33,493 nt of DNA from Macrostomum lignano (Eukaryota): contig NIVC01001003.1 of assembly GCA_002269645.1 (NCBI GenBank), positions 342,217-375,709 of the forward strand, in the 5' to 3' direction. Within the stretch, counting starts at the first letter, position 1. Every line of letters begins with the position of its first letter. The notes beneath the pieces are model-generated. The model had not been told where the DNA came from and did not search any database. It saw only the letters and a program-made list of their open reading frames with translations. Positions 1,446 to 32,139 of the stretch are shown piece by piece. The translations under genes were made by a program, and so were the position numbers.

Positions 1446-2093
1446 GTGGATGATAAAAGGTGAGATTGAGAGTCTATGATAAAAGGTGAGATTGAGAGTC
1501 GATGATAAAAGGTGAGATTGGAAGTCGATGATAAAAGGTGAGATTGAGAGTCGATGATAAAAGGTGAGATTGAGAGTCTATGATAAAAGGTGAGATTGAG
1601 AGTCGATGATCAAAGGTGAGATTGAGAGTCTATGATAAAAGGTGAGATTGAGAGTCGATGATAAAAGGTGAGATTGAGAGTCGATGATAAAAGGTGAGAT
1701 TGAGAGTCGATGATAAAAGGTGAGATTAAGAGTCGATGATAAAAGGTGAGATTGAGAGTCGATGATAAAAGGTAAGATTGAGAGTCGATGATAAAAGGTG
1801 AGATTGAGAGTCTATGATAAAAGGTGAGATTGAGAGTCGATGATCAAAGGTGAGATTGAGAGTCTATGATAAAAGGTGAGATTGAGAGTCGATGATCAAA
1901 GGTGAGATTGAGAGTCTATGATAAAAGGTGAGATTGAGAGTCGATGATAAAAGGTGAGATTGAGAGTCGATGATAAAAGGTGAGATTGAGAGTCGATGAT
2001 AAAAGGTGAGATTGAGAGTCGATGATAAAAGGTGAGATTGAGAGTCGATGATAAAAGGTGAGATTGAGAGTCGATGATAAAAGGTGAGATTGA
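1446..2093. repeat. Tandem array, 26-bp unit GATGATAAAAGGTGAGATTGAGAGTC
   Basis: Direct reading; the 26-aa periodicity in the spurious ORFs agrees. Confidence 0.95.
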
Positions 2094-3070
2094 GTGGATC
2101 ATAAAAGGTGAGATTGAGGGGATCATAAAAGGTGAGATTGAGTGGATCATAAAAGGTGAGATTGAGGGGATCAAAAAAAGGTGAGATTAAGGGGATTATA
2201 AAAGGTGAGATTAAGGGGATTATAAAAGGTGAGATTGAGTGGATCATAAAAGGTGAGATTGAGTGGATCATAAAAGGTGAGATTGAGGGGATCATAAAAG
2301 GTTAGATTGAGGGGATTATAAAAGGTGAGATTGAGTCGATGATAAAAGGTGAGATTGAGTCGATGATAAAAGGTGAGATTGAGGGGATCATAAAAGGTGA
2401 GATTGAGGGGATCATAAGAGGTGAGATTGAGGGGATCATAAAAGGTGAGATTGAGGGGATCATAAGAGGTGAGATTGAGGGGATCATAAAAGGTGAGATT
2501 GAGTGGATCATAAAAGGTGAGATTGAGTGGATCATAAAAGGTGAGATTGAGGGGATCATAAAAGGTTAGATTGAGTGGATCATAAAAGGTGAGATTGAGT
2601 GGATCATAAAAGGTGAGATTGAGTGGATCATAAAAGGTGAGATTGAGTGGATCATAAAAAGTGAGATTGAGTGGATCATAAAAGGTGAGATTGAGTGGAT
2701 CATAAAAGGTGAGATTGAGTGGATCATAAAAGGTGAGATTGAGTGGATCATAAAAGGTGAGATTGAGGGGATCATAAAAGGTGAGATTGAGGGGATTATA
2801 AAAAGTGAGATTGAGTGGATCATAAAAGGTGAGATTGAGTGGATCATAAAAGGTGAGATTGAGTGGATCATAAAAGGTGAGATTGAGTGGATCATAAAAG
2901 GTGAGATTGAGGGGATCATAAAAGGTGAGATTGAGGGGATTATAAAAAGTGAGATTGAGTGGATCATAAAAGGTGAGATTGAGTGGATCATAAAAATTGA
3001 GATTGATTGGATCATAAAAGGTGAGATTGAGTGGATCATAAAAGGTGAGATTGAGGGGATTATAAAAGGT
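2094..3070. repeat. Tandem array, 24-bp unit GATCATAAAAGGTGAGATTGAG(TG/GG)
   Basis: Direct reading; 8-aa MIHSISPF periodicity. Confidence 0.95.
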
Positions 3071-3848
3071 GTAGCAGTGAAGCTGCAGGTTAAAAAGAGA
3101 TTACATAAGAGGCGGCTTTTTGAAGAGTGACTGACACAAGTCGTTCCCCAGGAGACGATGGTGAGACGTGAGTGCATGTTGAGAGAGCAAAGCAATATTG
3201 CAGTTAAATGCAGACTAATTTCCCAAAGCAACCAGTCTATAATTTGCACTGGTTGCAAAAGCAAACAGCGTGTGAGAGAGAGTGTGAACGAGAGAGTGAA
3301 AATTGCTTTTCACAAAAGAAGTAGCTCGTAACAAGCAATAGAAAACCAACCCAGAGGCTAAAAAAGGGATTGGAGAAACACTTGGCAGATCGGGCAGTCA
3401 TTCATCAAATTCATGCAGCCTTTGACTTCAGCAATTGAAGGGCAGCGTATAACCGCGCTGGCAAACCGCCTCGCTTTTCTACTGGCTTGAGGATCAAAGG
3501 AAATGCGTAATTAGAAACCAGCGAACACACATGTGGTGCACAGCTAGCGTAATAGCCTCTCTACAATGCGAATTGAAGCAGCCAATATATCTTCTTATTA
3601 CTTTAGTAGATAAATTAATTATAAAGATTAGAAACGAGAAAAGTAACTTTATTGCTAATATTAGCAATTAATTAGTCAATGCAACAACGTCTTATAAAAA
3701 AGTTATATTATTATTTGTACATAAATTCCAGCTGCTACTTATGGAGACTACTAACAGTAGGCTTGCATGCAATTTACTTTAGAATGTACTAAAAGAAGAT
3801 TAAAGGAACAATTATTATACAATAGTATTAACAAGGTGATACTTAAAT

Positions 3849-13800: not shown

Positions 13801-16800
13801 ACTCGAAACGCAGCCAACTCCAGCCGACGCTCAGCAAAAGGCCGCATCAGCAGCACCAGCAGCAGCCGGTGCAACGGGAGCAGCCGGTGGGTGTACACCA
13901 GACTAGTCACGTGATGCAGAGCCGAAACCTCGGCATTGTCGGCCGCGCTAGCGACTTCCCTGGTGAGCAGGTCGCAGAAGATGCGCAGATGCGGCAGGGC
14001 GCCCTTTGGCCCGAGGCTCTCCTGGACTCGGGCGAACAGCTGGGCCGCTGGAAGGTCACCGCCACGCTCCCGCAGGCAGCTGAGCGCCACCCAGTACAGG
14101 CAGCCAGCTGAGGGGTCGCTTAGCTGGGCCTCATCGCACTGGCCCTCCTGCAGGATGCGCTGGCTCAGGCGGGTGGCCAGCTCGGCTGAGCCGGTCAGCT
14201 GATGCGACTGACGCTCAGCTGAGGGCACCGAGATTCTGTCCGGGCTGGCCAACAGGCGCGGCTGCATGGAGATCGGCACCTGGGGTGGGTGGAGAATGAG
14301 GAATGTGAAGGTTCTGGGATTTGAGACTATGGGATATGGGATTTGAAGCTATGTGATATGGGATTTGAGGCTATGGGATATGGGATTTGAAGCTATGTGA
14401 TATGGGATTTGGGGCTATGGGATATGGGATTTGAGGCTATGGGATATGGGATTTGAGGCTATGGGATATGGGATTTGAGGCTATGGGATATGGGATTTGA
14501 AGCTATGTGATATGGGATTTGAGGCTATGGGATATGGGATTTGAAGCTATGTGATATGGGATTTGGGGCTATGGGATATGGGATTTGAGGCTATGGGATA
14601 TGGGATTTGAGGCTATGGGATATGGGATTTGAGGCTATGGGATATGGGATTTGAAGCTATGGGATATGGGATTTGAGGCTATGGGATATGGGATTTGAAG
14701 CTATGGGATAGGGGATTTGAGGCTATGTGATATGGGATTTGAGGCTATGGGATATGGGATTGAGGCTATGGGATATGGGATTTGAAGCTATGGGATATGG
14801 GATTGAGGCTATGGAAAATGGGATTGAGGCTATGGGATATGGGATTTGAGGCTATGGGATATGGGATTAGAGGCTATAGGATATAATATTTAAGGTTATG
14901 GGATATGGGATTAGAGGCTATAGGATATAAGATTTAAGGTTATGGGATATGGGATTTAAAGCTATGTGATATATGATTTTAGGTTATGGGATATGGGATT
15001 TGAGGCATGTGTCCTTGAGCAAGACATCTTAACTCTGCACTGCTTCAGTTCACCCAGCTGTAGAATGGGTGCCATGGGTGCCCTAACCCCCCAGTCCTTA
15101 GACTGAACAGTCGTATGCAGCCTTCAGTTACGCCGCGCAATCGAAGTAATCAATTATACTGTGAATTATTACTGGGATTAAGCACAAAATGATTTACGAG
15201 TACTATTTGTTAGCAAGATATGAATACTTAGAGATGCTATAAAAGTTCATCTTGTACCAGGCATGCAGCCGAGCATTTCTGAAACAGCGGCTGAACAAAG
15301 TCGGATAGCAGCAGGCCGTCAGGATCTGCTTGCTGGTGAATCAGCTGGTGATTGATCTGCAGCAGTAGGTATTTATTCAGCTCCTCCTGGTCGCTGCCGC
15401 AGATCCAAGCCACGTACAGCTTCTTCACGTGGTTGTTGGTGACCTGGGGGGGATTGTACTAATAAGTATAACTGCATTGTACCCATTGCCTACCTGCCTA
15501 CTAATGGTATTTACTAGTCTATCTACTACCCATTATACCCCTAATAGAACTATAATTATCCCTAATCTACCCATGATATCTCTAATCTACCCATGATATC
15601 TCTAATCTACCCATGATATCTCTAATCTATCCATGATATCTCTAATCTACCCATGATATCTCTAATCTACCCATGACATCCCTAATCTACCCATTATATA
15701 CCTAATCTACCCATTATATACCTAATCTACTCATTATATCCCTAATCTACCCACTATATCCCCAATCTACCTATTATATCCCTAAGCTACACACTATATA
15801 CCAAATCTACTCATTATATCCCTAAGCTACCCACTATATACCAAATCTACCCATTATATACCTAATCTACCCATTATATACCTAATCTACCCATTATATA
15901 CCTAATCTACCCATTATATACCTAATCTTCCCATTATATCCCTAATCTACCCATTATATCCCTAATCTACCCTTTATATACCTAATCTACCCATCATATC
16001 CCTAAGCTACCCATTATATCCCTAAGCTACCCATTATATCCCTAAGCTACCCATTATATCCCTAAGCTACCCATTATATACCTAATCTACCCATTATATA
16101 CCAAATCTACCCATTATATACCTAATCTACCCAGCCCACAACCAACCTGCAGAGCGGGAGTGAGCAAGGCTTGAGCCTGCCTATACAAGCACAGCTCAGT
16201 GTCCAGCCCCAGCCGGTTAGCCTTGGCCAGAGTGACCAGGTTCTGCAGCAACAGGTGCCTCTGCATGGGTTCAACGCTGTTCAAGTGATACGTGGCCAGC
16301 TCGAACACAAAGGCCAACACTCTGCTTCCACCAGTGTTGCCAGCCTTAGTGAAGGCCTCCGTGAGTACAGATTTAGGCTGCAAATTCAAATCGTGATGCA
16401 TGAGCACAGTGATCCTGGCGTACGTGTCCAGCACCACGGGACTGTCGGCATGGGTTGACAGCAGGTTGTACAGCAGACTGTTGATAGCCAGCAGTGACAT
16501 TGTGGCTAACTGGCGTAGGCTGGAGTAAGATGGAGCAATGGCGTCTGATTGTTTGAGCGCTTCTACCAGCTTGGAGTTGAGCGGGCTGACCACCTGCGGG
16601 TCATAGGGTCATGGTCTATGATTGTGCGATCATACACTTTTCGGAACTTTGGATGAATGATTTTGGAATCATGCGATATTAACATAGGGTCATGGAATAA
16701 CGGAGATCAGTAAGGGACTTCCAAAAATGCGATTGAGAATGAGAATAGGATCATGTGACCCTGCAGAATATAATTATGGGATCATAAGAGAATGTGATCA

Positions 16801-19800
16801 TAGTCATAGAGAATGGGATCATAGGGTCATAGAGAATGGAATCATATGGTCATAGAGAATGGAATCATAGGGTCACAGAGAATGGAATCATAGGGTCATA
16901 GAGAATGGAATCATAGGGTCATAAAGAATGCGATCATAGGGTCATAGAGAATGGGATCATAGGGTCATAGAGAAGGGGATCATAGGGTCATAGAGAATGG
17001 AATCATAGGGTCATAGAGAATGGAATCATAGGGTCATAAAGAATGGGATCATAGGGTCATAGAGAATGGGATCATAGAGTCATAGAGAATGGGATCATAG
17101 TCATAGAGAATGGGATCATAGTCATAGAGAATGGGATCATAGTCATAGAGAATGGGATCATAGTCATAGAGAATGGGATCACATACATAAATATTTAAAT
17201 CATGGGATCATAGAGAATGGGATCATAGGGTCATAGAAAATGGGATCATAGAGTCATAGAGAACGGGATCAGAGTCACAGAGAACGGGATCAGAGTCATA
17301 GAGAATGGAATCATAGGGTCATAGAGAATGTGATCATAGTCATAGAGAATGGAATCATAGCGTCATAGAGAATGGGATCATAGGGTCATAGAGAATGGAA
17401 TCATAGGGTCATAGGGAAGGGGATCAGAGTCATAGAGAATGGAATTATAGGGTCATAGAGAATGGGATCAAAGTCATAGAGAATGGAATCATAGTCATAG
17501 GGAATATGATCATAGTCACACGCACGTAATGGGATTAGGGGATCAATGGGAAAACATCCCAGCGCTACAAACCTGAGGCTGACCCAGAGGCGCATAAGCA
17601 TTATAAACGTAGGCGAACCAGCGAAACTCTTCGGGATCCAGCGGGACTTGATAGCTGGGAGACTGCGACATCTGCTGGAACTTCTCCATCAGCTCTGACA
17701 TCATTGGCTGCATCGGAGGCGGCAGGGCTCGAGGCAGCCGCTCGTTGGGCGCGCTGGACTTCTGGGTGAGGCTGAACCAAACCAGCAGGGTGGTGTCAAA
17801 GGCTGGCGCCCCGCCTGGAAACAGCGCGTCAAGGATGCGCAGGATGGGAGCAAAATCTACGAGGGGATTTTTGTTTTGAGCGCCCAAGAAGTTGAACAGC
17901 ATCCAAGCGATGTGCGGCGCCGAACGGCTGAGCGAATCTCGTCGATCTTGCAGGCCTGGTTTTGGTTGAAGGGAATTGAATATTAGCGAAATGTTTGCAT
18001 TGCTACTCAGTCAGTAGAGTAGTCCAAGTATGTTGCAATATCTATCTGAGCCAGGTGAGTGTCTCAGTTGACGATATGCGAGATTAGGGAAAAATAGCTG
18101 GCATACTAAGGGATCTGGGAGGCTGACCCAGCAACTGAGGATCTGGGAGGCTGGTACAGCAACTGAGGATCTGGGAGACTGGTACAGCAACTGAGGATCT
18201 GGGAGGCTGACCCAGCAACTGAGGATCTGGGAGGCTGGTACAGCAACTGAGGATCTGGGAGGCTGGCCCAGCAACTGAGGATCTGGGAGGCTGACCCAGC
18301 AACTGAGGATCTGGGAGGCTGACCCAGCAACTGAGGATCTGGGAGGCTGGCCCAGCAACTGAGGATCTGGGAGGCTGACCCAGCAACTGAGGATCTGGGA
18401 GGCTGACCCAGAAACTGAGCTCAATACCTTCCAAAACTCCAAGGCACATCTCGGGAAAGCGCACGAGATGCAGCCGACAAAGATGGATGCTGTACAGTCC
18501 CAGATGACGCCACATCATGTCTGCCCAAGCCATCTCGCTATCGGATTCGCAGGCCTCGGTCTCGTCGGCAGTCCACAGAATGGTGTCAATCAAGCATCGC
18601 TCCAGAAACAGGCACCTGGATATCTTGCTAGCCCTTGGTGCCGTGTGCAGTGACAGAAGACTCAACAACAGGTCCATGCTGCCCTGCTGCGTGAGCACAG
18701 CCCTGATGAGGCTGGTATGCGGTCTCTGCAAGCACCTGGCATAGGGCAGGGGGCCCTTCAAATCCAGGGCGCCAGTCGAGGCCAGCAGATTCACGGGCAC
18801 ATTGGTGACGCTGCTGGGCTGCGGATGCTGCAGAATGGCCGGCGGCATGCAGTAGTTGCCAACACCGGCTATGGGAACGATTTGACGGATCACTGCGGGG
18901 GCGGAGCAGGCGGGTGAGTCATCTGCTACTCTGATCCAGCAGGAATGATTAGCAGCACCTTACCTCTGTGCGAGAACATGTTGGCAACGTTTTTGAAGCT
19001 ATTGCGAAATGTTTCCAGTTTGGTCTTTAAAATCTGAGGGAGGAAAGTTATTGAGGATCTGCTGCTGGACTGATTGTGAATTTATCGATCATTCTGTATA
19101 AAATATAGACACCCGTACGACTCTACTACGACTAGGACTACTACTACAACTTTTCTACTATTAGTCTACTACTGAAATACAGTGCCCAGTTGCCTGTGAA
19201 CAGGGTCTGAGCAGACAGTAGTCTGTAAACAGGGTCTGAGCAGACAGCAGTCTGTAAACAGGGTCTGAGCAGACAGCAGTCTGTAAACAGGGTCTGAGCA
19301 GACAGCAGTCTGTAAACAGGGTCTGAGCAGACAGCAGTCTGTAAACAGGGTCTGAGCAGACAGCAGTCTGTGAACAGGGTCTGAGCAGACAGCAGTCTGT
19401 GAACAGGGTCTGAGCAGACAGCAGTCTGTGAACAGGGTCTGAGCAGACAGCAGTCAGTGAACAGACGCCGCCAACTGCGACTCGTGACTTGTCTGGCTAC
19501 ATTAAAACAGTCTACCAGTACGACTCTACTAAGACTACGACTACTACGTCTGTGACCAGATGCCATGAACTGCTACTTGTGGCCGGTCTGGCCTACTCAA
19601 ACTAATTTAATCTCGTATGTGCATCAAATTATTTACACTTCGTTAATTAGTCAGAGTTCTCAGTGCTCTATAACAATTATTTATTTTTCTAAATAACTTA
19701 TTTGTAGTATTTTTCAAGCTGGTTAGTCACATTTCTAAGCTGTAATGCCTTAACCAGTCAGAGTGCTTTAATTCCCTCTTTGTATTAGCTATATGTACGT

Positions 19801-22800
19801 GCATTTTTACACAACACTGCTCAGTGCACCCAGCCAAAGCTGGTACATAAATAATAATGTTATGAGGAAATAACTTCACTACCAAAATAATTGCTACTTT
19901 ATATACCCTCAAAATAAACCCTGACGAAGGCCATGATTTGGCCGAAATATCGGTTATTTCAAAGTTTGACACCTGAAAACTTCAATCTTCCGTGTGCGTG
20001 GTTGCGGTTTCAGACTGTCTTATACTCGTAGATATCTCTATTTATCTATTTATCGATCTTTCGATCTATATATCCATCTATCTTTCTATCTATCTATGGA
20101 TCAAATATACTTCATTAACTACTAAACGGCAGTGCCCAGTTGTCTGTGTCCAGGGACTGAGCAGACGGTGATCTGTGTCCAGACGCCGCCCACTGATACT
20201 TGTGGCTTGCCAGGATAAACAATTAAATTACTGCATATGCATCAGTATGTAATTATTTACCCTTCTTTAACCAGTTTAAGTAAGGTCGTAGTGCTCTGTA
20301 ACAATTTAATTTACTTTAAAAACATTAGACACCAGTGAATGCGGCGGAAAGATCCTCCCAACGCTGCGCATTGAGGGACAGGAATTAACCTACGACCCGA
20401 CACCCACGTTCCTTGGCCTTCGCCTAGACGACCAACTGACTTTCGCCAACCATATAGAGGCAGTGCGCAAAAGATGGCCACCAGGCGGCGTTGTCTGCAA
20501 AGTCTCGTTGGCAAATCCCAGGAAAATACTTCATCTTATTAAAGAGGAACCAATTTTTTGAAAGAATCCGGTGATGAAGAAGTCTTGCCTACAGAGTTTT
20601 TGGTGGTGGCTGACTCAGCCCCTAATGCTGCTGCTTCTGGGCTTCCAGGCGGCCCTGCTTCTGCTGATTCTGGGCTTTCCGGCACTCCCGCTGCTGCTGC
20701 TGCCGAGGGCGCCCCTGCTGGTGTTGCTATTACTGTAAACTCCAGGGGTCCACGTGGAGTCCGTGGCCAAAAATGGCTGATTTGGAGTCCGCCCTCAATA
20801 AGCTAGAGCGCAATCCTCGGTTTGGAACGGACCTTATGTTAAAGGCGAATTTCGTCAACAAGTTTTTAACTTACATCATCAATGACGTCTTTAACAATTA
20901 TAAAAGCCGGCAAGATCCGTATCTTTATGGAAAAGAGCTAAATGACATAACCATCTCCATCGTTTCTATGTACCCAGGAATGCGAGACGGGTCGAGCGAT
21001 GGACTATTTTTTGGTGGCAGAAAATTCACCGAAGATTCGCTGCTAATTCCAGCAACTCCGGCATTTCCGCGTCGTGCATGGCGGAAAATGATGAGGATAG
21101 TGACGAAGAAAACGTAGTTTCATTTGCAAGTAAGCGCCGAAAAATTGCTACCATCGTAGATGCGTCCGATGATGACGAAAACGTAGTACAAGCAAAGCGC
21201 CTGCAAGTCAACTGTGAGGATGCTGAGAGTACGACTACATCGACAAGCAAGCTTGTCAAAAGCGTCATTTTTGGAGATGTGGAATGCGTTCCTGAAAGTC
21301 ACGAAGTTGACCGAATTAGGTTGAACAAAAATTTCCACACAATGGAAATCGAAGAGGTATTAAGCAATATGAAAAGTCTATTTAGTGTGCGAGTCGTGCG
21401 TTGCCAAGAGAGAACTGTTGAAGAGGAGGCTGAATTGTATAAGCCATTATCACTACCACGTGTTCAGTTGCAAGAGGCATTTCTTATGATTCAGTTGTAT
21501 AACTCTAGACGCAAGGCTGACTATGTGTTTCCTCGAACACCTGAGGATATTGAACAAAATGTATGCGGTGCACTCCGGCATGTGTGGCAAGAACGAGATG
21601 CAATGAAGCGGTACTTGTACTGCTAGCCGTTTCTGAACGCTGAATGTGATAACGACGACACCATTCTAATAAACGGCCTTTGCCTGCACCTTGATCGATT
21701 AAGGATTGACCCTGCGAAACTTTTTTGATACTGAGCTGCCAATTGAAATTCTGAAGGAAGGCGAAAGTAATTGCAATCTGTTCCGTATCGTTTACCTGCA
21801 GCATGTGCCCTATCTGGAAGCCTCCCTCGAGACGTATTAGAAGTATTGTGAAAACTCCCTCGACGTGATGCTGTGTCCTGCGCACCTTCCCAGTCGCTGA
21901 TTGCTATACTTCGTTAATAAAACTTTAACTTAGCATTCGACATTTTATTCGTATAATGAAAGTCTATGTTCCCCCTTAAACACCACCTAAGCTTAAGGTT
22001 TATTAATGTCTCCACTAATAAAAAACCCTTTAAACTTACCTTAATAAGTTTAACCCAATTACCGGCTACCTTAATAAACAAATGACAATTTTTCTTAATA
22101 CAGAATTGATACTGCATAGCTATTTTTATACTGTTTATTCTTATATTAAGCTGAAGCTTGTAAATGGTATTGTCTGCAGCACTGGATCACTCATTTATAT
22201 ATAAAATCATGTATGACATTATAAAATATAAACAATATTTTTATAAAGTAATGTTTTTTTATAATGTTTGCATCTAATTTTCGTGTAGTTCCATGTAATT
22301 TTTGCATACTTTTTGACGTTGACGTAATAATTGAAATACTTTCATGCGTGTGTATGTATGTTGTATTAGTATTTCACGTTGCGAAAAAATAATAAAACAC
22401 CAAGTAATGAGTGTATGTCAATATACACTGCATGTGATAATTATAATACGATAGGGAGCATTTATCTGGCAGACAGATATTAGTGTTGTAATTCATGGTT
22501 ACAAATTCAAGACTTGCATATCGTATAATTTTCTTCTTGTCAGTGATTTTTTTCGTATTATAATACAAAAATGATGGGTGTTCTCGATTGTGTACATTAA
22601 CTTTTTATTAAAAAGAATTTGCATCAGTTGATCTAACTTCTAAGCGTGCGAAAGCCAATAAATCTGAATTTAGCTAGTCAACCTTGCAAACGAAACTACG
22701 CTCGTACATGCGGACCCTTCTTGCATTCGACCTTTAGGGTCCGTATATAGCGACGCCGCGGACCCTAACATACGGACCCCTGCCGGACCTTTTTTCGAAC

Positions 22801-25800
22801 CCATACATTCGGACCTTTAGGGTCCGTATATAGCGACGCCGCGGACCTTAACATACGGACCCCTGCCGGACCTTTTTTCGAACCCATACATTCGGACCTT
22901 TAGGGTCCGTATATAGCGACGCCGCGGACCCTAACATACGGACCCCTACTTGACCTTTTTTCGGATCCATACATTCGGACATTTGGGGTGTAGCGACGCC
23001 GCGGACCTAACATACCGACCCCTACTTGACCTTTTTTCGGATCCATACATTCGGACATTTGGGGTGAGCGACGCCGCGGACCTAACATACCGACCCCTAC
23101 TTGACCTTTTTTCGGATCCATACATTCGGACATTTAGGGTCCGTATATAGCGACGCCGCGGACCCTAACATACGGAACCCTACTGGACCTTTTTCGGATC
23201 CATACATTCGGACATTTGGGGTGAGCGACGCCGTGGACCTAACATACCGACCCCTACTTGACCTTTTTTCGGATCCATACATTCGGACATTTGGGGTGTA
23301 GCGACGCCGCGGACCCTAACATACTGACCCCTACTGGACCTTTTTTCGGATCCATACATTCGGACATTTAGGGTCCGTATATAGCGACGCCGCGGACCCT
23401 AACATACGGACCCCTACTGGACCTTTTTTCGGATCCATACATTCGGACATTTGGGGTGTAGCGACGCCGCGGACCTAACATACCGACCCCTACTTGACCT
23501 TTTTTCGGATCCATACATTCGGACATTTAGGGTCCGTATATAGCGACGCCGCGGACCCTAACATACGGACCCCTACTGGACCTTTTTCGGATCCATACAT
23601 TCGGACATTTGGGGTGAGCGACGCCGCGGACCTAACATACCGACCCCTACTTGACCTTTTTTCGGATCCATACATTCGGATATTTGGGGTGAGCGACGCC
23701 GCGGACCTAACATACCGACCCCTACTTGACCTTTTTTCGGATCCATACATTCGGACATTTGGGGTGAGCGACGCCGCGGACCTAACATACCGACCCCTAC
23801 TGGACCTTTTTTCGGATCCATACATTCGGATATTTAGGGTCCGTATATAGCGACGCCGCGGACCCTAACATACGGACCCCTACTGGACCTTTTTCGGATC
23901 CATACATTCGGACATTTGGGGTGAGCGACGCCGCGGACCTAACATACCGACCCCTACTTGACCTTTTTTCGGATCCATACATTCGGACATTTGGGGTGAG
24001 CGACGCCGCGGACCTAACATACCGACCCCTACTTGACCTTTTTTCGGATCCATACATTCGGAAATTTGGGGTGTAGCGACGCCGCGGACCTAACATACCG
24101 ACCCCTACTTGACCTTTCTTCGGATCCATACATTCGGACATTTGGGGTGTAGCGACGCCGCGGACCCTAACATACCGACCCCTACTTGACCTTTTTTCGG
24201 ACCCATACATTCGGACATTTAGGGTCCGTATATAGCGACGCCGCGGACCCTAACATACGGACCCCTACTGGACCTTTTTCGGATCCATACATTCAGACAT
24301 TTAGGGTGTAGCGACGCCGCGGACCCTAACATACCGACCAATACTTGACCTTTTTGGATCCCTGGGGTTTACAGTGTACAATTGAGCCGGTGGAGCCAAT
24401 TCCTGATTGAATCAAGGAGTCTGATCAGACTATCGTGGCGGCAAATATTCTACCCGGCGTGTCGTTTTCCTACCGCCTGTCAGCGGTGCCGGGTATGCAG
24501 TGACTTAGAAGAACATATATATTTTATTTCCCACTAACAATATAAATTCGTTGCATTTTGTTATTAATAATTATACTAAGAACCCTGACGAAGGCCAATC
24601 CACAGCCGAAGTATCGGTTCACTAAATTGATTTATATTAGTTATGACCTCTGCGTCTCTCTTTGATATTTCTTGGCTAACTTAGTTAGAGCTGCTAATGT
24701 GTGAGTGGTCTTTTTCAAACGTCTATTTATCTATCAATGAATCAAATATACTTCATCAACTACTGAACGGCACTGCCCAGTTGTCTGTGTCCAGGGACTG
24801 AGCAGAAAGTGGTCTACTCGTATGTCCAGACGCCGCCAACTGATAGCCTGATAGTTTGATAGCCTAAGTGAGGTCTCAGTGCTCTATAACAATTTAATTT
24901 ACTTTTTTTAAAACGTATTCATTATACCTTTCAAGCTGTTTAGTCACACTTTAATAATCGTTCAATGTGACTTTATATAGCTCCTAATGCCTATAATTTT
25001 TTGTGTGAGGCATTAGCCGCAAAGCTCTAACCAATCAGTGTGCTTTAATACACTTTTTACACAACACTGTTTAGTGCACCCAGACAAAGCTGGTGTATAA
25101 ATAACCTGGTTATGATGCAATAACTTCACTGTCAAAATTTTATTTTCTTTTAACCTGACGAAGGCCACGATTTTGCCGAAATATTGGTAGTTTTGAAGAA
25201 AAGTACGACTTCTGATTTCTGCTTTATTCATATTTATCGATAGAATAGATATCGATAGCTGGTGAAACCCGCAAATCGCAGCATCAGCAGCAGTCAAACC
25301 GTCGGAGACCTGATACCCAGTACCATCTTCGGAGGGATGGGCGCCGGTCAAGGTCGCAAGACAGAGGCTCTGAGAATGTCACCATCATTGTACTCGTACT
25401 CGTAAACGTCGAAGTGCGAAAGGTGCGATGACAGTAGACAATGCCCGGCTGGTTCGGTTGGTCAAGAAACTCTTCCCGATCTGTTCATCACTATGAAAAC
25501 TGTCAGACCATCCCAAAATAACTGCAAAGCAAAACAGAACAACTCAAGACTTTTATTCGACCGGCCATGCCAACCAAGAGGACTGAGGAGAACGTCCGAT
25601 TGAACGCAGACACCTGAGATGTGAGCACCCAGGACGCAATGCAAAGTCATTGTGAAGAATGAATCTTTTGAACGACTTCCACAATTAAGGGAAGCGTTCA
25701 AGGGAGTCGACAGCGAAAGACGGTTCAACTGTGACTCGACGGTGTTACGGTAAGTTACGAATTGTGTTTGAAAAAAATGGAACTTGGAAATCCTCTATAA

Positions 25801-28188
25801 AAGACATTCTGTGCCCATCCAAACCCCGTGCACTGACTGCACGTGGTCAAGCCGGGTTAGTTCATCAGTTTATCTCTCATCGCTGCGCTCCCATCACTTC
25901 TAACAATTTATTGATTTTAATGTCCCCAGCAAACTCTTTTTGAGTGCTCATATTTTATAAACCATTGCTTTACTGTTTCTCGCAAAACAAATTTTCGGAC
26001 CCTGACGAAAGCTACGATTTGGCCGAAAATTTGGTCTAGTTTATAAACAAATCAAATTGTACCTTCTCTCACTGTGTGTGCGGTTTTTTAATTGATTTCG
26101 TCTTTCTATCTATCTATCTATCTATAAATCAGCCCAGCAGCCTCACCGGATGCAGATTGGTCTGCTCAGCCGGGGGCAGTTTAGTCACTTCGTGCAGAGC
26201 AAAATAGGCGGGCATCAGGCAAAGCGAGCGATCCATCAGGGTGGTGATGAGCTGCGGGTTCAGTGGGTGTCACAGACAGTTATAAAGCAATAAATAATTT
26301 CGAGTTGTAGCTCGTAAGTAAGATAAATATTTGATTTAAAAGAAATCGACAGTAAGCAACTTTATTACACACGGGTAAACTTCTAAATCTTACTAAAGCT
26401 TCAATAAATTCCATAGAAATTCTCTACTTATTTCTTGTATTTATTAGCCTCAATTGTCGGAAAAAAAAACAACTTGTACAGTTGAAAGCGTCATTTGTAG
26501 GATTCCAAAGGCGCCATTTGTTGAATTTTAAAAGCGCCATTTGTGAGAATTAAAAAACGAAATTTTTAGGATTTAAAAAGCGCCATTTGTAGGCTTTAAA
26601 AAGTGCCATTTGTTGAATTTAAAAGGCGCCATTTGTGAGATTTAAAAGCGTTGTTAAACAAACAAAACAATATTGCAACAAACCTTGAACGCAGGAACAA
26701 AGACTTTGTCTTCACCTTCGCTGAAAGTCTTGTACAAGCCCAACACTTTTCCAAACAGATCCCTGCAGCCTTTGTAGTCCATCTGTCTGACCAGACGATC
26801 CATCACTGTCACGGCCTCTTTAAAGAAGGCCGGATTTCGCATGATATCGTCGTGAGAGACCAACAACTCGTCACAGATGTGCCTGAGTAGGGGGTGATTT
26901 TCGTTCGGGGCGACACTTTGAAACTGAGTTTTATAAACTGGGCAAAACGAACCGAATAACTCAGCCTTAATGAATCCATGAACAGCTAACTCATTCATGA
27001 TGTGAAAGTGTGAGAGAGCATCTTAATAATAGATGTTGTACACCATTTATTGTAACCAAGCAAACATTACTGAAAGGCACTAACTTGGCAGACAGTAATC
27101 CGCTGTTAATAAGCGGATAAAATACTTCCAGACAGCTGACTAACACGCGATCAAGGAACTCCTCCATGACGTGGCTGATGTACAGTTTCACTGCTCGTTT
27201 GCGGTCCTCCTGAAAGTTGAGAATGTACTTTTTTGAAGACGAAAAATCTTTTTTCAGGACCTTCAACGGTTTGCTAAACTTTGTCCCTGAACCTTTAGTG
27301 GACTGCTCAGCCTTGTCCCTGAACCTTTAGTGGACTGCTAACCCTTGTTGCTGAACCTTTAGTGGACTGCTAACCCTTGTTGCTGAACCTTTAGTGGACT
27401 GCTAATTCTTGTCCCTGAACCTTCAGTAGCCTATTCAGTCTTGCCCCTGAACCTTCAGTAGCCTACTCAGTCTTGTCCCTGAACCTTCAGCAGCCTACTC
27501 AGTCTTGTCCCTGAACCTTCAGTAGCCTATTCAGTCTTGCCCCTGAACCTTCAGTAGCCTACTCAGTCTTGTCCCTGAACCTTCAGCAGCCTACTCAGTC
27601 TTGTCCCTGAACCTTCAGTAGCCTACTCAGTCTTGCCCCTGAACCTTCAGTAGCCTATTCAGTCTTGCCCCTGAACCTTCAGTAGCCTACTCAGTCTTGT
27701 CCTTGAACCTTTAGTAGCCTACTCAGTCTTGTCCTTGAACCTTCAGTGGCCTATACAGTATTGTTCCTGAACCTTCAGCGGTCTGTTAACTCTTGTCCCT
27801 GAGCTTCCAGTGGTTGCTAACTCTTGTCCCTGAACCTTCAGTGTCTGTTAACTCTTGTCCCTGAGCTTCCAGTGGTTGCTAACTCTTGTCCCTGAACCTT
27901 CAGTGTCTGTTAACTCTTGTCCCTGAGCTTCCAGTGGTTGCTAACTCTCGTCCCTGAACCTTGTCACTGAACCTCCCGTGAACTGCTAACCATTTTCCTT
28001 GATCCTCCTCAATAAAAACTCACCAGATTAAAAGGCCGAAAGGTGTCGATCACATAGCTAGGCAAAAAGCTGTCAGCATCCCCAGCAAGATAGCTGTTCT
28101 CGCTGGCAGAATTTGGCGAAGACTGACTGCCACTTAGTCGCTGGTATGAGCCCAGCCGATACAGAGCAATGTCAGACACATGGTTCTC
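4534..28188 (-). CDS. MED23: Mediator complex subunit 23 (spliced CDS; first ATG exon not located). join(complement): 28024-28188, 27085-27260, 26684-26882, 26147-26251, 18964-19033, 18428-18892, 17573-17955, 16147-16593, 15258-15443, 13732-14279, 11068-11967, 5818-6013, 4534-4884
   Basis: Colinear motifs matching MED23 as I recall it: MDYKGCRDLF (VDYKGVRDLL), DRSLCLMPAYFAL (ERNACLLPAYFAV), QEELNKYLL (SEELNRALI), FPQLDWFGHEWPSSCSHAVNCCALQL (FPNCDWRFNEFPNPAAHALHVTCVEL), ADYFYHIKYMFVGD (CDFLYHMKYMFTGD). All junctions are GT-AG with matching phases; total 4191 nt, no internal stop. Confidence 0.93.
4925..5770. repeat. Intronic tandem array, 39-bp unit GGTACGGGATCTGGGATTCTGAGGGTATGGGATTCTTGG
   Basis: Direct reading; 13-aa periodicity in the spurious ORFs. 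Confidence 0.93.
5818..6013 (-). CDS. MED23: MED23 exon 12 of 13 traced
   Basis: Acceptor cccatag|G, donor AAG|gtgact; AYLSHAGPGRVAQLPVFF aligns to AVWHHSSIGQLSLIPKFL. Confidence 0.88.
6406..6618 (-). repeat. 3' LTR (213 bp)
   Basis: Direct repeat of 10480-10693; preceded on the element strand by the PPT GGGAAGGAG (6619-6627). Confidence 0.95.
6697..9062 (-). CDS. Gypsy pol: reverse transcriptase, RNase H, integrase
   Basis: SEWATPIVCV..., LDLTNAYLQ, YQDD, TDASPVGLGAVL, NYAQIEREAL, HHCC zinc finger, DDE motifs (HADYAG / VTDNGPQF / NGLAERF). Disconnected from the protease by a small deletion at ~9063-9068. Confidence 0.92.
9063..10467 (-). pseudogene. Gypsy gag-protease region with two frameshifts
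   Basis: Gag starts MATIPIEPL; capsid-like WLQRFE...LRDQFVFGL; two CCHC knuckles (CFCCGKDGHRKDVC, CLNCGKTGHLKAVC); protease MDTGS. Frame breaks near 9961-9966 and 9842-9846. Confidence 0.88.
10464..10478 (-). other. Primer-binding site TGGTGACGAGGATGG (tRNA-Ser(GCT)-type)
   Basis: Lies 1 nt after the 5' LTR; complementary (one G:U pair) to the ...CCAUCCUCGUCG-CCA 3' end known for animal tRNA-Ser(GCU). Confidence 0.75.
10480..10693 (-). repeat. 5' LTR (214 bp)
   Basis: Differs from the 3' LTR by 3 substitutions and a 1-nt indel; contains overlapping AATAAA on the element strand. Confidence 0.95.
11068..11967 (-). CDS. MED23: MED23 exon 11 (900 nt, phase 2-2)
   Basis: Acceptor ccgcccgcag|C, donor AG|gttggt; contains the FPQLDW...HAVNCCALQL and WQSAGLLLAQMP motifs. 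Confidence 0.88.
12170..13670. repeat. Intronic tandem array, 20-bp unit CATGAGGTATCATTTAGGGT, interrupted at 12982-13240
   Basis: Direct reading. Confidence 0.93.
12982..13226 (+). mobile_element. Probable solo LTR (245 bp)
   Basis: Unique AT-rich insert in the 20-bp array with TGTTAA...TTAACA termini and AATAAA near the right end; no TSD found. Confidence 0.45.
13732..14279 (-). CDS. MED23: MED23 exon 10
   Basis: Acceptor ccccag|GTG, donor AG|gtagct; LVYTHRLLPLHRLLLVLLMR aligns to MVWKYNIVTLDRLILCLAMR. Confidence 0.88.
14315..15005. repeat. Intronic tandem array, 22-bp unit GGGATATGGGATTTGAGGCTAT
   Basis: Direct reading. Confidence 0.93.
15008..15069 (+). mobile_element. CORE-SINE (MIR-like CORE domain) fragment
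   Basis: TGTGTCCTTGAGCAAGACATCTTAAC...TCAGTTCACCCAGCTGTAGAATGGG aligns with the MIR CORE consensus (GTGACCTTGGGCAAGTCACTTAAC...TCAGTTTCCTCATCTGTAAAATGGG); no tRNA-derived head seen. Confidence 0.7.
15258..15443 (-). CDS. MED23: MED23 exon 9
   Basis: Acceptor ccccag|GTC, donor CTG|gtacaa; SDQEELNKYLLLQI motif. Confidence 0.85.
15555..16130. repeat. Intronic tandem array, 20-bp unit CCTAATCTACCCATTATATA
   Basis: Direct reading. Confidence 0.93.
16147..16593 (-). CDS. MED23: MED23 exon 8
   Basis: Acceptor cgcag|GTG, donor CAG|gttggt; LDTYARI and FELATYHL motifs (VETYSRL, LEMFSYRM). Confidence 0.88.
16800..17515. repeat. Intronic tandem array, 23-bp unit CATAGGGTCATAGAGAATGGGAT
   Basis: Direct reading. 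Confidence 0.92.
17573..17955 (-). CDS. MED23: MED23 exon 7
   Basis: Acceptor accag|GC, donor CAG|gtttgt; AWMLFNFLGAQNKNPLVDFAPILRILDALFP aligns to MWVLLQFISGSIQKNALADFLPVMKLFDLLYP. Confidence 0.88.
18105..18420. repeat. Intronic tandem array, 28-bp unit CAGCAACTGAGGATCTGGGAGGCTGACC
   Basis: Direct reading; explains the repetitive tail of ORF 18084..18893. Confidence 0.93.
18428..18892 (-). CDS. MED23: MED23 exon 6
   Basis: Acceptor ccccgcag|TG, donor G|gtattg; LPY...LIRAVLTQ...WRHL motifs. Confidence 0.88.
18964..19033 (-). CDS. MED23: MED23 exon 5 (70 nt; ILKTKLETFRNSFKNVANMFSHR)
   Basis: Not in the ORF track. Acceptor cctccctcag|ATT, donor G|gtaagg; phases bridge exons 4 and 6; aligns to LLGNLVSDFVDTFRPTARINSIC. 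Confidence 0.85.
19195..19462. repeat. Tandem array, 29-bp unit TCTGTAAACAGGGTCTGAGCAGACAGCAG
   Basis: Direct reading; an expansion of a segment of the ribozyme-bearing module. Confidence 0.92.
19912..19959 (+). ncRNA. Minimal type-I hammerhead ribozyme motif HHR1 (best-formed copy)
   Basis: AACC-CTGACGA-A-GGCCA(tgatt)TGGCC-GAA-ATAT-C^GGTT: stem I AACC/GGTT, core CUGANGA, 5-bp stem II, GAAA, palindromic helix III AUAU, predicted cut after the AUC at 19951. Confidence 0.8.
20325..20519 (+). pseudogene. Non-LTR retrotransposon (I-group LINE-like) RT C-terminal fragment
   Basis: Hand translation LRIEGQELTYDPTPTFLGLRLDDQLTFANHIEAVRK, then (after a 1-nt shift at the A-run ~20469-20472) KMATRRRCLQSLVGKS. 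This fits the LINE motif FLG-x-LD-xx-LTF-xx-HI...R...L..L.G. Confidence 0.75.
20520..21900 (+). pseudogene. Broken intronless ORF of unknown function (~450 codons if repaired), likely a transposon accessory gene
   Basis: ORFs 20558-20806, 20773-21117 and 21078-21626 lie in three successive frames. The T6 run at 21007-21012 links MYPGMRDGSSDGLF to WWQKIHRRFAAN. Coding-like sequence continues past TAG 21624-21626, T6 21721-21726 and TAG 21838-21840 to TGA 21900. Confidence 0.55.
22730..24355. repeat. Satellite array with ~75-bp and ~83-bp unit variants (GACCTTTTTTCGGATCCATACATTCGGACATTT...GCGACGCCGCGGACC...)
   Basis: Direct reading; 25-aa periodicity in the spurious ORFs. Confidence 0.92.
24580..24620 (+). 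ncRNA. Hammerhead motif HHR2 (core variant GAAG)
   Basis: GAACC-CTGACGA-A-GGC(caatccaca)GCC-GAAGTATC^GGTTC; 5-bp stem I; A15.1->G change, probably impaired. Confidence 0.65.
25151..25189 (+). ncRNA. Hammerhead motif HHR3 (degenerate stems)
   Basis: TAAC-CTGACGA-A-GGC(cacgatttt)GCC-GAA-ATAT-T^GGTA; core intact, one mismatch in stem I. Confidence 0.6.
25997..26037 (+). ncRNA. Hammerhead motif HHR4
   Basis: GGACC-CTGACGA-A-AGCTA(cgatt)TGGCC-GAA-AATT-T^GGTCT; stem I GACC/GGTC, palindrome AAUU, mismatch at the base of stem II. Confidence 0.6.
26147..26251 (-). CDS. MED23: MED23 exon 4 (LITTLMDRSLCLMPAYFALHEVTKLPPAEQTNLHP)
   Basis: Not in the ORF track. Acceptor cccgcag|CTC, donor CCG|gtgagg; strong match to the LLPAYFAV motif. 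Confidence 0.9.
26485..26650. repeat. Short intronic array, ~24-bp unit AAAAGCGCCATTTGTAGGATTTA
   Basis: About six degenerate copies read directly. Confidence 0.8.
26684..26882 (-). CDS. MED23: MED23 exon 3
   Basis: Acceptor ctactcag|G, donor AAG|gtttgt; DYKGCRDL motif. Confidence 0.9.
27085..27260 (-). CDS. MED23: MED23 exon 2 (acceptor position uncertain)
   Basis: Donor AA|gttagt; LINSGLLSAK aligns to AVETGLLPPR. The phase-0 acceptor gttgaag|GTC was chosen to match exon 1. Confidence 0.75.
27280..27965. repeat. Intronic tandem array, ~32-bp unit CTTGTCCCTGAACCTTCAGTAGCCTACTCAGT
   Basis: Direct reading; three sub-blocks of variant units. Confidence 0.92.
28024..28188 (-). CDS. MED23: Probable MED23 exon 1 of those traced (ENHVSDIALYRLG...FRPFNL)
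   Basis: Acceptor ttgacag|GAG, donor CTG|gtgagt, 55 open codons. Sequence similarity is weak; the assignment rests on position and phase. Confidence 0.65.
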
Positions 28189-28869: not shown

Positions 28870-29510
28870 CCGGGACATGGGGAATGGGGGGTTTTAGGGT
28901 GGGAAGAATCTTCATGGGGATTGATTTTACCTACTTAAACTTTAATAGAGGCATGGGGGTCTATTGAAGATTAGATAGGTAAATTCTGAACCCAAGGGGG
29001 GGGGTCTGATCAGAGGGGGGGGTGGGGTGGGCCGATAACTACCAACTACTGGGATAGGGAATGGGGGGGTTTAGGGTAAGGAGAATCTTCATGGGGATTG
29101 ATTTTACCTACTTAAACTTTAATAGAGGCATGGGGGTCTATTGAAGATTAGATAGGTAAATTCTGAACCCAAGGGGGGGGTCTGATCAGAGGGGGGGGGG
29201 TGGGGTGGGCCGATAACTACCAACTACTGGGATAGGGAATGGGGGGTTTAGGGTAAGGAGAATCTTCATGGGGATTGATTTTACCTACCTAAACTTCAAT
29301 AGAGGCATGGGGTCTATTGAAGATTAGATAGGTAAATTCTGAACCCAAGGGGGGGGTCTGATCAGAGGGGGGGGGTGGGGTGGGCCGATAACTACCAACT
29401 ACTGGGATAGGGAATGGGGGGGTTTAGGGTAAGGAGAATCTTCATGGGGATTGATTTTACCTACCTAAACTTCAATAGAGGCATGGGGGTCTATTGTAGA
29501 TTAGGTAGAT
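28870..29510. repeat. ~3.5 tandem copies of a ~177-bp G-rich unit
   Basis: GAATCTTCATGGGG anchors at 28906, 29083, 29260, 29436. Confidence 0.92.
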
Positions 29511-30184
29511 AAATTTGGAGACTGAGGGGTCCAGGGTGGAAATGTAATGAAGCTTAAGTAAAACATTCAGCAAGTTATCAAATACCTCCATTAAGAAAAA
29601 ATTATAATCTTATCAAACTAATTGATATAAGCAGCTATAGTTACCATTGAGAATAGAGAAAAAAATGCAGATTAGTAGAAATTAAGTATAGGCAAACAAG
29701 TAAAGAATGTACAGTTAGTCACAACCATGAGAGAACAACAGCAAATCAAAAGCAGGAGGTGAAGGTGGTGGTGAACCAGGAGTCAGCATTTTTTAAAAAC
29801 ACAAATTTGATGTGGCACTCTCCATGCACTATAACAAACTGAGTGAAGAAAAATTAGAATAGACACTCCTTTTATTAGAGTTAAAAATCTAACCTCCTAA
29901 ATGTTTTTTAGAGTGAACTAGCAATCTAGTGTGGCTGTGGCCCCCCTTTGGGGCACCCAATAAGCAAGGAGCAAAAATAGTTCATGGAAAGAAAAATGAA
30001 AAGAGCACATTTTCTTAAACACCAATTCCATCTTCAGTTTAAAAAATCACCTTATTCATGGAAAATTTTCACAGACAATGATGTTTGCTATGAATCTCTT
30101 TTTCCAAAATCAACAAACAGACAACAAAATATAGCTTTCACAAAGATAAAAGACATTCCCCTAAATAGAAAATATTCCTAAGAA

Positions 30185-31651: not shown

Positions 31652-32139
31652 GTGCAACCTCAGTTTATTAATTGACTATGGTGTCAATGAGAATTCAATA
31701 AAAATTGCTTCAATGAAATTTTATTTAAAAAGGAACCATTTTTGAAACAAAAAATAAGTTAACTTGTTTTGTTAATATAAAATTAAACAATCACAAGTAA
31801 TATTAATCATTTTCCAATTATAATGTATAGTGAATACAAATTACTTTATCTAATTTGATATTCAGTTTTGTTATAATGTCAAATAATTGCCTTGTCATGG
31901 TTTCCTCTTTTTTAAATTTTATGGTTTTTTACGGTTCCTTTATCCTAAAAAACCCCCAAAACATTCCTAATGGCATATGCCTTAGTATTTGGTCATTGAT
32001 CTTCTAGTAGGGTACCCCTCCACTGAGTCTAGAATTTATCAACACTATCTTGAATAGGTCTCCATGCCTCTATTCAAGTTTATGTTGATAAAATCAATCC
32101 CTATGAAGAATCTCCCCACTCTAAAAGGTACCCAGTCAA

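Follow-up and report, generated by a model that had tools for sequence, protein, structure and literature searches.

A 570-nt interval between two damaged minimal hammerheads, most likely formed by separate insertions of a short non-coding retroelement

Our analysis of the window (here meaning the whole 33,493-nucleotide stretch of DNA) leads to a reading to which we give a probability of roughly 60%, namely that the region holds old and decayed copies of a non-coding retroelement of about 0.5 kb, which carries a minimal hammerhead of the Penelope-like element (PLE) type in its 3′ part and was mobilized by PLEs, with two insertions meeting at a 570-nt hammerhead-to-hammerhead junction. The motifs themselves, their defects, the copy boundaries, the association with microsatellites, and the link of the motif type to PLEs are established. 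The sequence-only reading of this DNA had assigned it to the hammerhead-bearing, non-autonomous retroelements, and with this we agree. The locus is an unexceptional case within an established class, and it adds one lineage and one sequence family to the many minimal hammerheads already tied to PLEs.

Four hammerhead-like motifs, all of them on the + strand, are found at positions 19914-19958 (HHR1), 24578-24622 (HHR2), 25148-25192 (HHR3), and 25995-26039 (HHR4), and judged by their sequences these are minimal hammerheads of the PLE type, the two that lie 570 nt apart being genuine but damaged. As the type I core, we took C3, U4, G5, A6, N7, G8, and A9, followed by G12, A13, and A14, an A15.1–U16.1 pair, and H17 (any nucleotide other than G) at the cut site. 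HHR1 has every one of these positions and is the sole intact minimal hammerhead of the four, consisting of helix I (AACC/GGUU), CUGACGA, an extra A, helix II (GGCC/GGCC) with a 7-nt loop, GAAA, UA, U16.1, and C17, with the cut after C19951. In HHR2, CUGACGA is kept (from position 24585), helix I has 5 bp (GAACC/GGUUC), helix II has 3 bp, and the cut would fall after C24615, but the conserved A15.1–U16.1 pair is replaced, with a G at position 15.1 giving GAAG at 24608-24611. HHR3 retains both the core (CUGACGA from 25155) and A15.1, has U as H17, and would be cut after U25185; its defects are a helix I mismatch (A25153 x G25187) and a helix II of 3 bp with a C·U at the fourth pair. Thus, the earlier claim that the local copies are impaired, which named the GAAG of HHR2 and the stem I mismatch of HHR3, is borne out. 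HHR4 is more diverged, with a helix I of GGACC/GGUCU, a helix III of AAUU, and a predicted cut after U26032, and its core is kept apart from an A at position 10.1 (A·C with C11.1). Here, the extra A after A9 is present in all four copies, the G10.1–C11.1 pair occurs in HHR1, HHR2, and HHR3, and positions 15.2/16.2 are UA in these same three motifs and AU in HHR4. Moreover, helix III has shrunk to A-UA-U and lacks a hairpin, and helix I is an open stem of 4-5 bp with no defined loop 1.

The resemblance of these motifs to hammerheads goes beyond what chance would produce. In fact, HHR1 is the single match of a strict minimal-hammerhead descriptor in the window, and this descriptor was matched in only 1 of 200 dinucleotide shuffles, for a chance mean of 0.005 per window. 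A covariance model built here (R1) gave HHR1 60.6 bits, with HHR1 itself among the training sequences. The 45-nt block around each motif is an island of similarity, since the flanks of HHR2 and HHR4 fail to align with the other copies. In an alignment of eight sequences, which includes three outside families, 80% of the cells pair, compared with at most 45% when the partners are slid, and helix I positions 4 and 5 are paired in all eight sequences, with 4 and 3 pair types, respectively. RNAalifold recovered helices I and II unaided. The outside families were retrieved by a pattern taken from the window's own core, and therefore the independent evidence is limited to helix I, helix III, and the inner part of helix II. 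Alternatively, there might be no ribozyme at all, merely a conserved 37-nt repeat core that resembles a hammerhead. Two observations speak for this: Rfam returned no hammerhead match (neither by cmscan over the whole window at the gathering score and at E ≤ 10 nor with its hammerhead models at E ≤ 10 on stretches of 121 nt and 701 nt), and the minimum free energy (MFE) folds of single sequences favour the hammerhead shape for HHR2 only. However, the same Rfam models also miss the hammerheads of a genuine PLE contig and of a large outside family (JAAUYG01), so the negative weighs little and does not discriminate for minimal variants. With the low chance rate of the descriptor and, over four families, compensatory changes in all three helices also set against it, we hold the absence of any ribozyme to be extremely unlikely. 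Because the Rfam hammerhead models miss the whole class, genome annotation pipelines leave minimal hammerheads unreported.

Comparison with published PLE hammerheads shows where the motif type belongs. The minimal hammerheads of PLEs have a nucleotide between A9 and position 10.1, a G10.1–C11.1 pair, a helix I of 4-5 bp, palindromic 15.2/16.2 positions, and no loop 3 (PMC4209133). In those described by Cervera and de la Peña (2014; PMC4209133), as in the motifs here, the topology is of type I, the core consists of CUGANGA and GAAA, one base stays unpaired between A9 and G10.1, the G10.1–C11.1 pair is present, helix I measures 4-5 bp, loop 3 is missing, and the palindrome at 15.2/16.2 implies that the motif acts as a dimer; shared as well are a place near the 3′ end of the element, 5′-truncated copies, and an association with microsatellites. 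The motifs differ from that system in that helix II here is 3-4 bp with a loop of 7-9 nt, compared with 6-8 bp in Schistosoma and Drosophila PLEs (PMC4209133), and in that the carrier here is a non-coding unit of about 0.5 kb with no PLE open reading frame nearby or elsewhere in the window.

Relatives of the motif type outside the window tie it to PLEs. A scan of metagenomes with a loose core pattern recovered more than 120 loci. One of these is the 3.2-kb contig L089, whose open reading frame of 931 aa has a match to RVT_1 (E 4.9e-10) and a weaker one to GIY-YIG (E 0.0027, with 18.4 bits falling below the 22.6-bit cut-off), and the same type of motif lies 160 nt after the stop codon of this frame. 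In the JAAUYG01 family, about 53 nt separate the hammerhead from the end of the element, an optional 35-nt tail is found in some copies, and there are inverted hammerhead pairs 100-200 bp apart; at two of its loci (L010 and L041), an inverted PLE-RT-like sequence is adjacent. To judge from these arrangements, the family shows the hallmarks of PLEs as described in PMC8557442. Placement beside a frame with reverse transcriptase and GIY-YIG is absent in the window and is present only in L089, L010, and L041. Neither tblastn with the L089 frame nor Pfam scans of open reading frames found a PLE reverse transcriptase in the window, and a protein profile made from the two open frames through the module matched none of 5.8 billion proteins. 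The strict pattern of the family gave 0 matches in metagenome and viral contigs, and the looser core pattern recovered other families but none of the window's own. Thus, with no PLE reverse transcriptase in the window and no outside copy of the exact family found, it is the motif type and the style of insertion that connect the element to PLEs. Four bacterial matches of the looser pattern, lacking a flanking helix I and surrounded by ordinary sequence, were taken as chance.

Along the locus, the copies all lie antisense within a MED23 intron, and their coordinates are given here for the + strand. Copy A has its body at 19165-19913, ahead of HHR1, and includes a 29-nt minisatellite (19194-19464, 9.3 copies), an expansion of a module motif that copies B and C have 1.5 times. 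The second unit that had been claimed for 19180-20129 is real as a module period, as CAGTGCCCAGTTG at 19180 recurs at 20130. A (TCTA)n tract identified by TRF (20037-20097) lies 86 nt 3′ of the HHR1 cut, and directly after it begins copy B (20098-20325), which comprises only the 5′ part of a body and is 85% identical to copy C; divergence sets in after about 20317-20325, and copy B is therefore without a hammerhead. HHR2 opens a 5′-truncated copy, which begins only a few bases before helix I, and upstream of about 24578 there is no similarity to the other copies. Its tail (24616-24721) is followed by a short (ATCT)-like tract (24722-24735), which is 107 nt after the HHR2 cut and is directly followed by copy C. 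By blastn self-comparison and alignment, the copy C body spans 24737-25147 up to HHR3, and its identity is 85% to copy B over the 5′ part and 75-81% to copy A. A degenerate ATCG/ATAG-type tract (25233-25258) closes the HHR3 copy, with unrelated intron DNA beyond. The sequence upstream of HHR4 does not align with the bodies of the other copies, and the (TCTA)n tail after this motif (26102-26125) reaches to within about 22 nt of the donor site of a MED23 exon (- strand). Altogether, HHR1, HHR2, and HHR4 are each followed by an (ATCT)n tract and HHR3 by a degenerate relative of it. The window contains 17 (ATCT)n-like matches, and for 14 of them the distance from HHR1, HHR2, or HHR4 is 70-110 nt in the downstream direction. 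Bodies B and C start directly after such tracts, and the HHR3 and HHR4 copies end at them. No target-site duplications were definable at the copies.

Microsatellite tails and 5′ truncation would also fit SINEs mobilized by LINEs, and the element could be a SINE-like passenger of a LINE rather than of a PLE, with the hammerhead serving only as a 3′-end or processing signal in the manner of Schistosoma Sm-alpha. The simple-repeat tail, the truncation, the dispersed short copies, and the flatworm host are all in keeping with this. As far as Sm-alpha is described in the source consulted (Ferbeyre et al., 1998, via PMC4209133), it is likewise a short, dispersed or tandem, non-coding retroposon of a flatworm with a type I hammerhead, but that hammerhead is canonical, unlike the minimal motif here, and no sequence similarity between Sm-alpha and the element was found. 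A tRNA-derived SINE head was sought and rejected, as no tRNA-like sequence was present. Given the minimal PLE type of the motif, the missing tRNA-like head, and the occurrence of the same motif type in the 3′ UTR of a real PLE, we find such a LINE passenger distinctly unlikely, and mobilization by PLEs is the reading retained below.

The interval between HHR2 and HHR3 (24616-25185) consists of the post-HHR2 tail, the (ATCT)-like tract, and the body of copy C as far as HHR3, and it had been read as a 570-nt monomer running from one hammerhead to the next. Its coordinates and arithmetic are correct, in that cuts after 24615 and after 25185 are spaced 570 nt apart and bracket one module unit. What does not hold is that HHR2 is the end of a sister monomer, for it belongs to a truncated stub, and the 45-nt blocks of HHR2 and HHR3 share only 60% identity. 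Since, in addition, the tails downstream of HHR2 and HHR3 do not align and (ATCT)n tracts lie at the junctions, the interval most likely represents two separate insertions joined at a microsatellite tail, rather than a tandem monomer. The possibility that HHR2 is the 3′ end of an interrupted copy B was rejected, as the sequence upstream of 24578 shows no alignment with the module body. In the region, there is one complete hammerhead-to-hammerhead unit and there are two junctions with the order hammerhead, tail, (ATCT)n, body (HHR1 to copy B and HHR2 to copy C). This repeated order, together with the habit of PLE insertions to consist of a full copy preceded by a 5′-truncated one (PMC8557442), could suggest that the HHR2 stub and copy C came from one event, either as a pseudo-LTR of PLE-type integration or as the relic of a longer array from circular or multimeric RNA, and have diverged since. 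However, copies from the same event start out identical, yet HHR2 and HHR3 share the mentioned 60% and have unalignable tails, when HHR3 is 80% identical to the distant HHR1; moreover, the HHR3 and HHR4 copies both end at a microsatellite, and this speaks for a fixed 3′ end rather than a permuted array. We therefore consider a single event rather unlikely. Being bracketed, in the preferred reading, by motifs from copies of different age, the interval illustrates that a hammerhead-to-hammerhead distance is insufficient for calling a retrozyme monomer.

With two insertions as the preferred reading, the history of the locus might run as follows. The element, laid out as a minimal hammerhead in its 3′ part, then about 50-110 nt, and then an (ATCT)n tract (degenerate after HHR3), would be a non-autonomous passenger of PLEs, belonging to a class also named animal non-LTR retrozymes. 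Its RNA would be copied into DNA by the reverse transcriptase and GIY-YIG endonuclease of a PLE, often with 5′ truncation, and insertion would prefer microsatellites, such that the (ATCT)n tails of older copies become the landing sites of new ones. Accordingly placed, copy C (ending in HHR3) would have inserted in or at the tail of the HHR2 copy, an older, 5′-truncated insertion, and the junction so formed would have generated the 570-nt interval. Lacking a helix III of its own, the hammerhead is expected to need a partner: activity would require a transcript with two motifs whose palindromic A-U-A-U segments pair to give a double hammerhead, and this may trim multimeric or read-through transcripts, with ligation of the ends by a tRNA ligase as a possible further step. 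The mobilizing enzyme and any RNA processing are what we infer from the features above, as is the order of insertion, which is drawn from divergence alone across four copies. The copies are old, as their identity of just 60-85% indicates. The locus is a relic that shows no sign of present-day function, and circular RNA is unlikely to come from it.

The sequence-only reading had gone further and proposed that self-cleavage at HHR2 and HHR3 frees a substrate for circularization. This is possible in principle but improbable at this locus, given a minimal PLE-type motif that is damaged in both copies. If the locus or its close relatives were a working retrozyme, cleavage at the two sites would yield a 570-nt RNA to be circularized by RtcB. 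Two same-strand hammerhead motifs do surround one unit, a double hammerhead could form by pairing of their helix III segments (AUAU and GUAU), RtcB circularizes cleaved animal retrozyme RNAs in vitro (PMC7229834), and the unit length lies inside the reported range, animal retrozyme consensus lengths being 51-972 bp (Li et al., 2026 preprint; 10.64898/2026.07.22.740005). Against this stand the G15.1 of HHR2 and the helix I mismatch and 3-bp helix II of HHR3, as well as the poor cleavage by minimal PLE-type hammerheads even as dimers, as self-cleavage was undetectable in vitro for single motifs and activity was low for dimers and trimers (PMC4209133). Moreover, the copies are old by their 60-85% identity, no known promoter is present, and the locus is antisense to its host gene. 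The predicted fold of the 570-nt circle (MFE of -119.1 kcal/mol, 54% paired) has a z of -1.08 against 100 dinucleotide shuffles and resembles two control stretches, and we thus rejected a rod-like, unusually stable or self-paired circle. Overall, a working retrozyme at or near this locus strikes us as very improbable.

Set beside known retrozymes, the locus is alike in some respects only. With the animal non-LTR retrozymes (Cervera and de la Peña, 2020, PMC7229834; 10.64898/2026.07.22.740005), it shares a non-coding unit with a GC content below 50% (0.37 here), same-strand type I hammerheads that bracket the unit, and a proposed dependence on PLEs. Those animal retrozymes proven to form circles, however, carry a canonical type I hammerhead, with a helix III hairpin and contacts between loops 1 and 2 (PMC7229834), whereas the motifs here are minimal and without evident loop-loop contacts. 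Described animal retrozymes also occur as head-to-tail arrays of similar units and give highly paired circles (PMC7229834), in contrast to the one bracketed interval with 60% identical motifs and the ordinary fold seen here. Plant LTR retrozymes (Cervera et al., 2016; PMC4918200) are alike in concept, as non-autonomous retroelements with an RNA lying between two hammerheads, but they have type III hammerheads inside LTRs, a PBS, a PPT, and 4-bp target-site duplications, none of which is present here. It is conceivable, though in our estimation quite unlikely, that intact copies of the family elsewhere in the genome form tandem arrays, from which paired minimal hammerheads release RNAs of 0.5-0.9 kb that are then circularized, with (ATCT)n as the integration target. 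If true, this would be the first case of PLE-type minimal, rather than canonical, hammerheads yielding retrozyme circles, and any such intact relatives would test whether minimal hammerheads drive circRNA formation.

As separate observations, a search with a MED23 exon and exact look-ups of nine open reading frames of the window gave no match, whereas its gypsy pol sequence is 60% identical to a protein of Macrostomum lignano and 78% identical to a Logan contig (SRR31628403).

Each of the four hammerhead-like motifs on the + strand (HHR1, 19914-19958; HHR2, 24578-24622; HHR3, 25148-25192; HHR4, 25995-26039) has a complete core, and together they share a 45-nt block with pairwise identities of 58-80%. 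From our reading of the sequence, CUGACGA starts at 24585 in HHR2 and at 25155 in HHR3; in both, an extra A precedes a short GGC...GCC stem, after which come GAAG (HHR2) or GAAA (HHR3), UAU, and a non-G base. The same 12-mer is carried by HHR1 (19921), while HHR4 (26002) has a version with two mismatches. As the sequence-only reading had proposed, the predicted cuts fall after C24615 and U25185, with a spacing of 570 nt. Here, HHR1 (A15.1-U16.1, C17, a 4-bp helix I, and a 4-bp GGCC/GGCC helix II) is free of defects. HHR2 pairs GAACC (24580-24584) with GGUUC (24616-24620) in a 5-bp helix I and has a 3-bp helix II, and its defect is a G at 15.1. In HHR3, helix I consists of C25154-G25186, a mismatched second pair (A25153 x G25187), A25152-U25188, U25151-A25189, and U25150.G25190, and the 3-bp helix II counts as a second defect. 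HHR4 keeps a 5-bp helix I, though the closing pair of helix II is lost, as an A at 10.1 faces C11.1. The earlier view that the local copy is impaired, through GAAG in HHR2 and a stem I mismatch in HHR3, thus agrees with the G at 15.1 and the A25153 x G25187 mismatch.

To gauge these motifs against chance, we used a strict descriptor (core, one extra base allowed, a minimum of 3 bp in each of helices I and II, a palindromic helix III segment of 0-6 nt, and U-H), which matched once in the window (HHR1) and in one of 200 dinucleotide shuffles (mean 0.005). Moreover, a covariance model built from the window motifs and outside relatives, when searched on both strands, returned exactly four sites, these being HHR1-4, with the next match at only 12 bits. 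Compensatory changes are seen in helix I, where the fourth pair is A-U, A-U, U-A, and G-C among HHR1-4. In an eight-sequence alignment of the window motifs, two metagenome loci (L089 and L049), and two variants from assembly JAAUYG01, the hammerhead structure pairs 80% of cells versus 18-45% with slid partners, with the independent evidence confined to positions other than the core, outer helix II pairs, and GG after the cut, as these were preset by the search pattern. Both inner helix I pairs are kept in all eight sequences (with four and three pair types), 15.2 and 16.2 pair as AU, UA, or CG, and helices I and II were predicted unaided by RNAalifold.

The hammerhead models of Rfam 15 gave no match at the gathering score, and none when the limit was relaxed to E<=10 for the whole window or when 121-nt and 701-nt stretches were searched. 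Even at E<=10, they were likewise silent on three metagenome loci with the same minimal hammerhead type, of which L089 alone encodes a Penelope-like element (PLE) ORF, and L045 and L102 belong to the large JAAUYG01 family. The Rfam models do not cover variants without helix III, and so their negative result is no evidence against the window motifs; this gap is a blind spot for the annotation of minimal hammerheads.

Minimal hammerheads were defined in PLE terminal repeats by Cervera and de la Pena (PMC4209133). In these, a nucleotide separates A9 from 10.1, the G10.1-C11.1 pair is conserved, helix I is short, and loop 3 is missing, with 15.2/16.2 being palindromic and helix III possible only through the pairing of two motifs. 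Every one of these traits is also found in the window motifs. In contrast, animal retrozymes proven to yield circles (PMC7229834) use a canonical type I hammerhead, which has loop-loop contacts and a hairpin at helix III, and neither is seen in the window motifs. Judged by these sequence traits, we assign the window motifs to the minimal PLE-type class, such that the original hammerhead call stands, but not as the canonical retrozyme type.

Among metagenome or viral contigs, the strict family pattern found no match. A looser core pattern (CTGACGAAGGC N5-12 GCCGAAA NN T H GG) gave more than 120 loci in metagenome contigs, nearly all in the single assembly JAAUYG01, which carries animal genes. 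This family (GGCAGA-GAGAU-UCUGCC with AAUU) comprises more than 100 near-identical minimal hammerheads of a PLE, 88 of which share one 35-nt sequence, and many lie at contig ends, which suggests that it was recently active in its animal host. The element ends sharply about 53 nt from the hammerhead, an optional 35-nt tail is seen in some copies, inverted pairs 100-200 bp apart occur at seven loci, and the inverted stubs at two loci (L010 and L041) adjoin PLE-RT-like sequence. All these traits (near-end hammerhead, optional tail, inverted pairs, and adjacent RT) are included in PLE descriptions (PMC8557442). L089 (OFEW01009023.1) encodes a 931-aa ORF matching RVT_1 (E 4.9e-10) and, more weakly and below the Pfam cut-off, GIY-YIG (E 0.0027), though the sequence does show the GIY-YIG motif. 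The stop codon of this ORF is followed 160 nt later by a minimal hammerhead (GGC/GCC, with ACGU as helix III).

Self-comparison of the window revealed the layout of the copies of the short non-coding element. The body of copy A (19165-19913) is directly followed by HHR1, from which 86 nt separates a (TCTA)n tract (20037-20097). The next one, copy B, runs from 20098 to about 20325; it contains only the 5' part of the body, at 85% identity to copy C. Some 4.2 kb of other sequence lies between copy B and HHR2, upstream of which nothing is alignable with the other copies. The HHR2 copy has a 106-nt tail and a short (ATCT)-like tract (24722-24735), and is followed by the body of copy C (24737-25147), HHR3, a degenerate tract (25233-25258), and unrelated DNA. 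For HHR4, the upstream region is unrelated to the other copies, and a (TCTA)n tract (26102-26125) lies downstream, beyond which the DNA is unrelated. The window has 17 near-matches to ATCTATCTAT (4 expected by chance), and 14 of them fall into three clusters, lying 70-110 nt 3' of HHR1, HHR2, and HHR4. Such a layout and clustering therefore point to an element with a fixed 3' end (hammerhead, tail, and microsatellite) and a variable 5' end, and new bodies appear to start exactly at older microsatellites. Copy A also contains a 29-nt minisatellite (19194-19464; 9.3 copies, 98% matches), whose motif occurs only about 1.5 times in copies B and C; it grew from the module's own motif, as a minisatellite arising out of mobile-element sequence. 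A 1.6-kb satellite (22748-24355), in which periods of 75, 232, and 468 nt are nested, sits directly upstream of the HHR2 stub.

The interval between the HHR2 and HHR3 cuts (24616-25185) had been proposed as a retrozyme circRNA monomer, and its 570 nt already lies inside the range of reported retrozyme consensus lengths (51-972 bp; 10.64898/2026.07.22.740005). The main rival to separate insertions is that the HHR2 stub and copy C form a pseudo-LTR from one event. Such a tandem would begin with identical copies, yet HHR2 and HHR3 are only 60% identical over the 45-nt block, their tails are at background similarity, and HHR3 is closer to the distant HHR1 (80%). Beyond this block, upstream sequence aligns for copies A and C alone (z = 25.6), with the remaining pairs at background. 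The simplest reading of these comparisons is that two insertions, differing in age or subfamily, were joined at a microsatellite. As a circle, the interval has a predicted fold of -119.1 kcal/mol (z = -1.08, 54% paired), which is unremarkable; two control stretches were similar. In vitro, single minimal motifs showed no cleavage, and dimers and trimers only weak cleavage (PMC4209133). Thus, while the bracketing pair is real and a retrozyme circle is possible for the family, one is unlikely at this locus, because both motifs are damaged and come from different copies, even intact minimal motifs cleave poorly, and the interval has no sign of a structured circle.

The window is animal DNA dense in minisatellites, and contains a divergent MED23 (Mediator subunit 23) gene on the - strand, with exons within 11046-26998 and introns full of 20-39-nt minisatellites. 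Matches to Pfam Med23 cover its positions 88-146 (26654-26998), 224-359 (18084-18893), 561-636 (16114-16593), and 809-882 (13728-14279), and the stretch of about 26148-26270 (- strand) is likely another exon; a word-seeded protein search found no homologue. HHR1-4 are therefore all antisense inside MED23 intron sequence, and host transcription would not yield the ribozyme strand. No PLE ORF was found in the window, nor a tRNA-like head for the element. Between HHR1 and HHR2, two overlapping ORFs (20773-21626, + strand; 114 and 182 aa) have no Pfam match, and may represent a nested gene or a piece of an unknown mobile element. A Ty3/gypsy-type retrotransposon (6697-10503, - strand) carries gag-like, protease, and RT-RNaseH-integrase ORFs, each in its own frame. 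Its pol is 60% identical to the best named relative, a Macrostomum lignano protein, and 78% to a Logan contig from SRR31628403; the former match hints weakly at a flatworm host. Arrays of a 28/48-nt 'TGACCTCATTTGACCCC' repeat flank this retrotransposon (6100-6406 and 10710-11002). A 177-nt tandem repeat (28880-29515, 3.6 copies) recurs in part, and inverted, 2.5-3 kb downstream (32014-32126). Lastly, two G-rich minisatellite arrays of very large size are found within 1-3071, one made up of about 50 copies of a 29-mer and the other of about 66 copies of a 24-mer, with a GC skew of about 0.8-0.86 across 3 kb.
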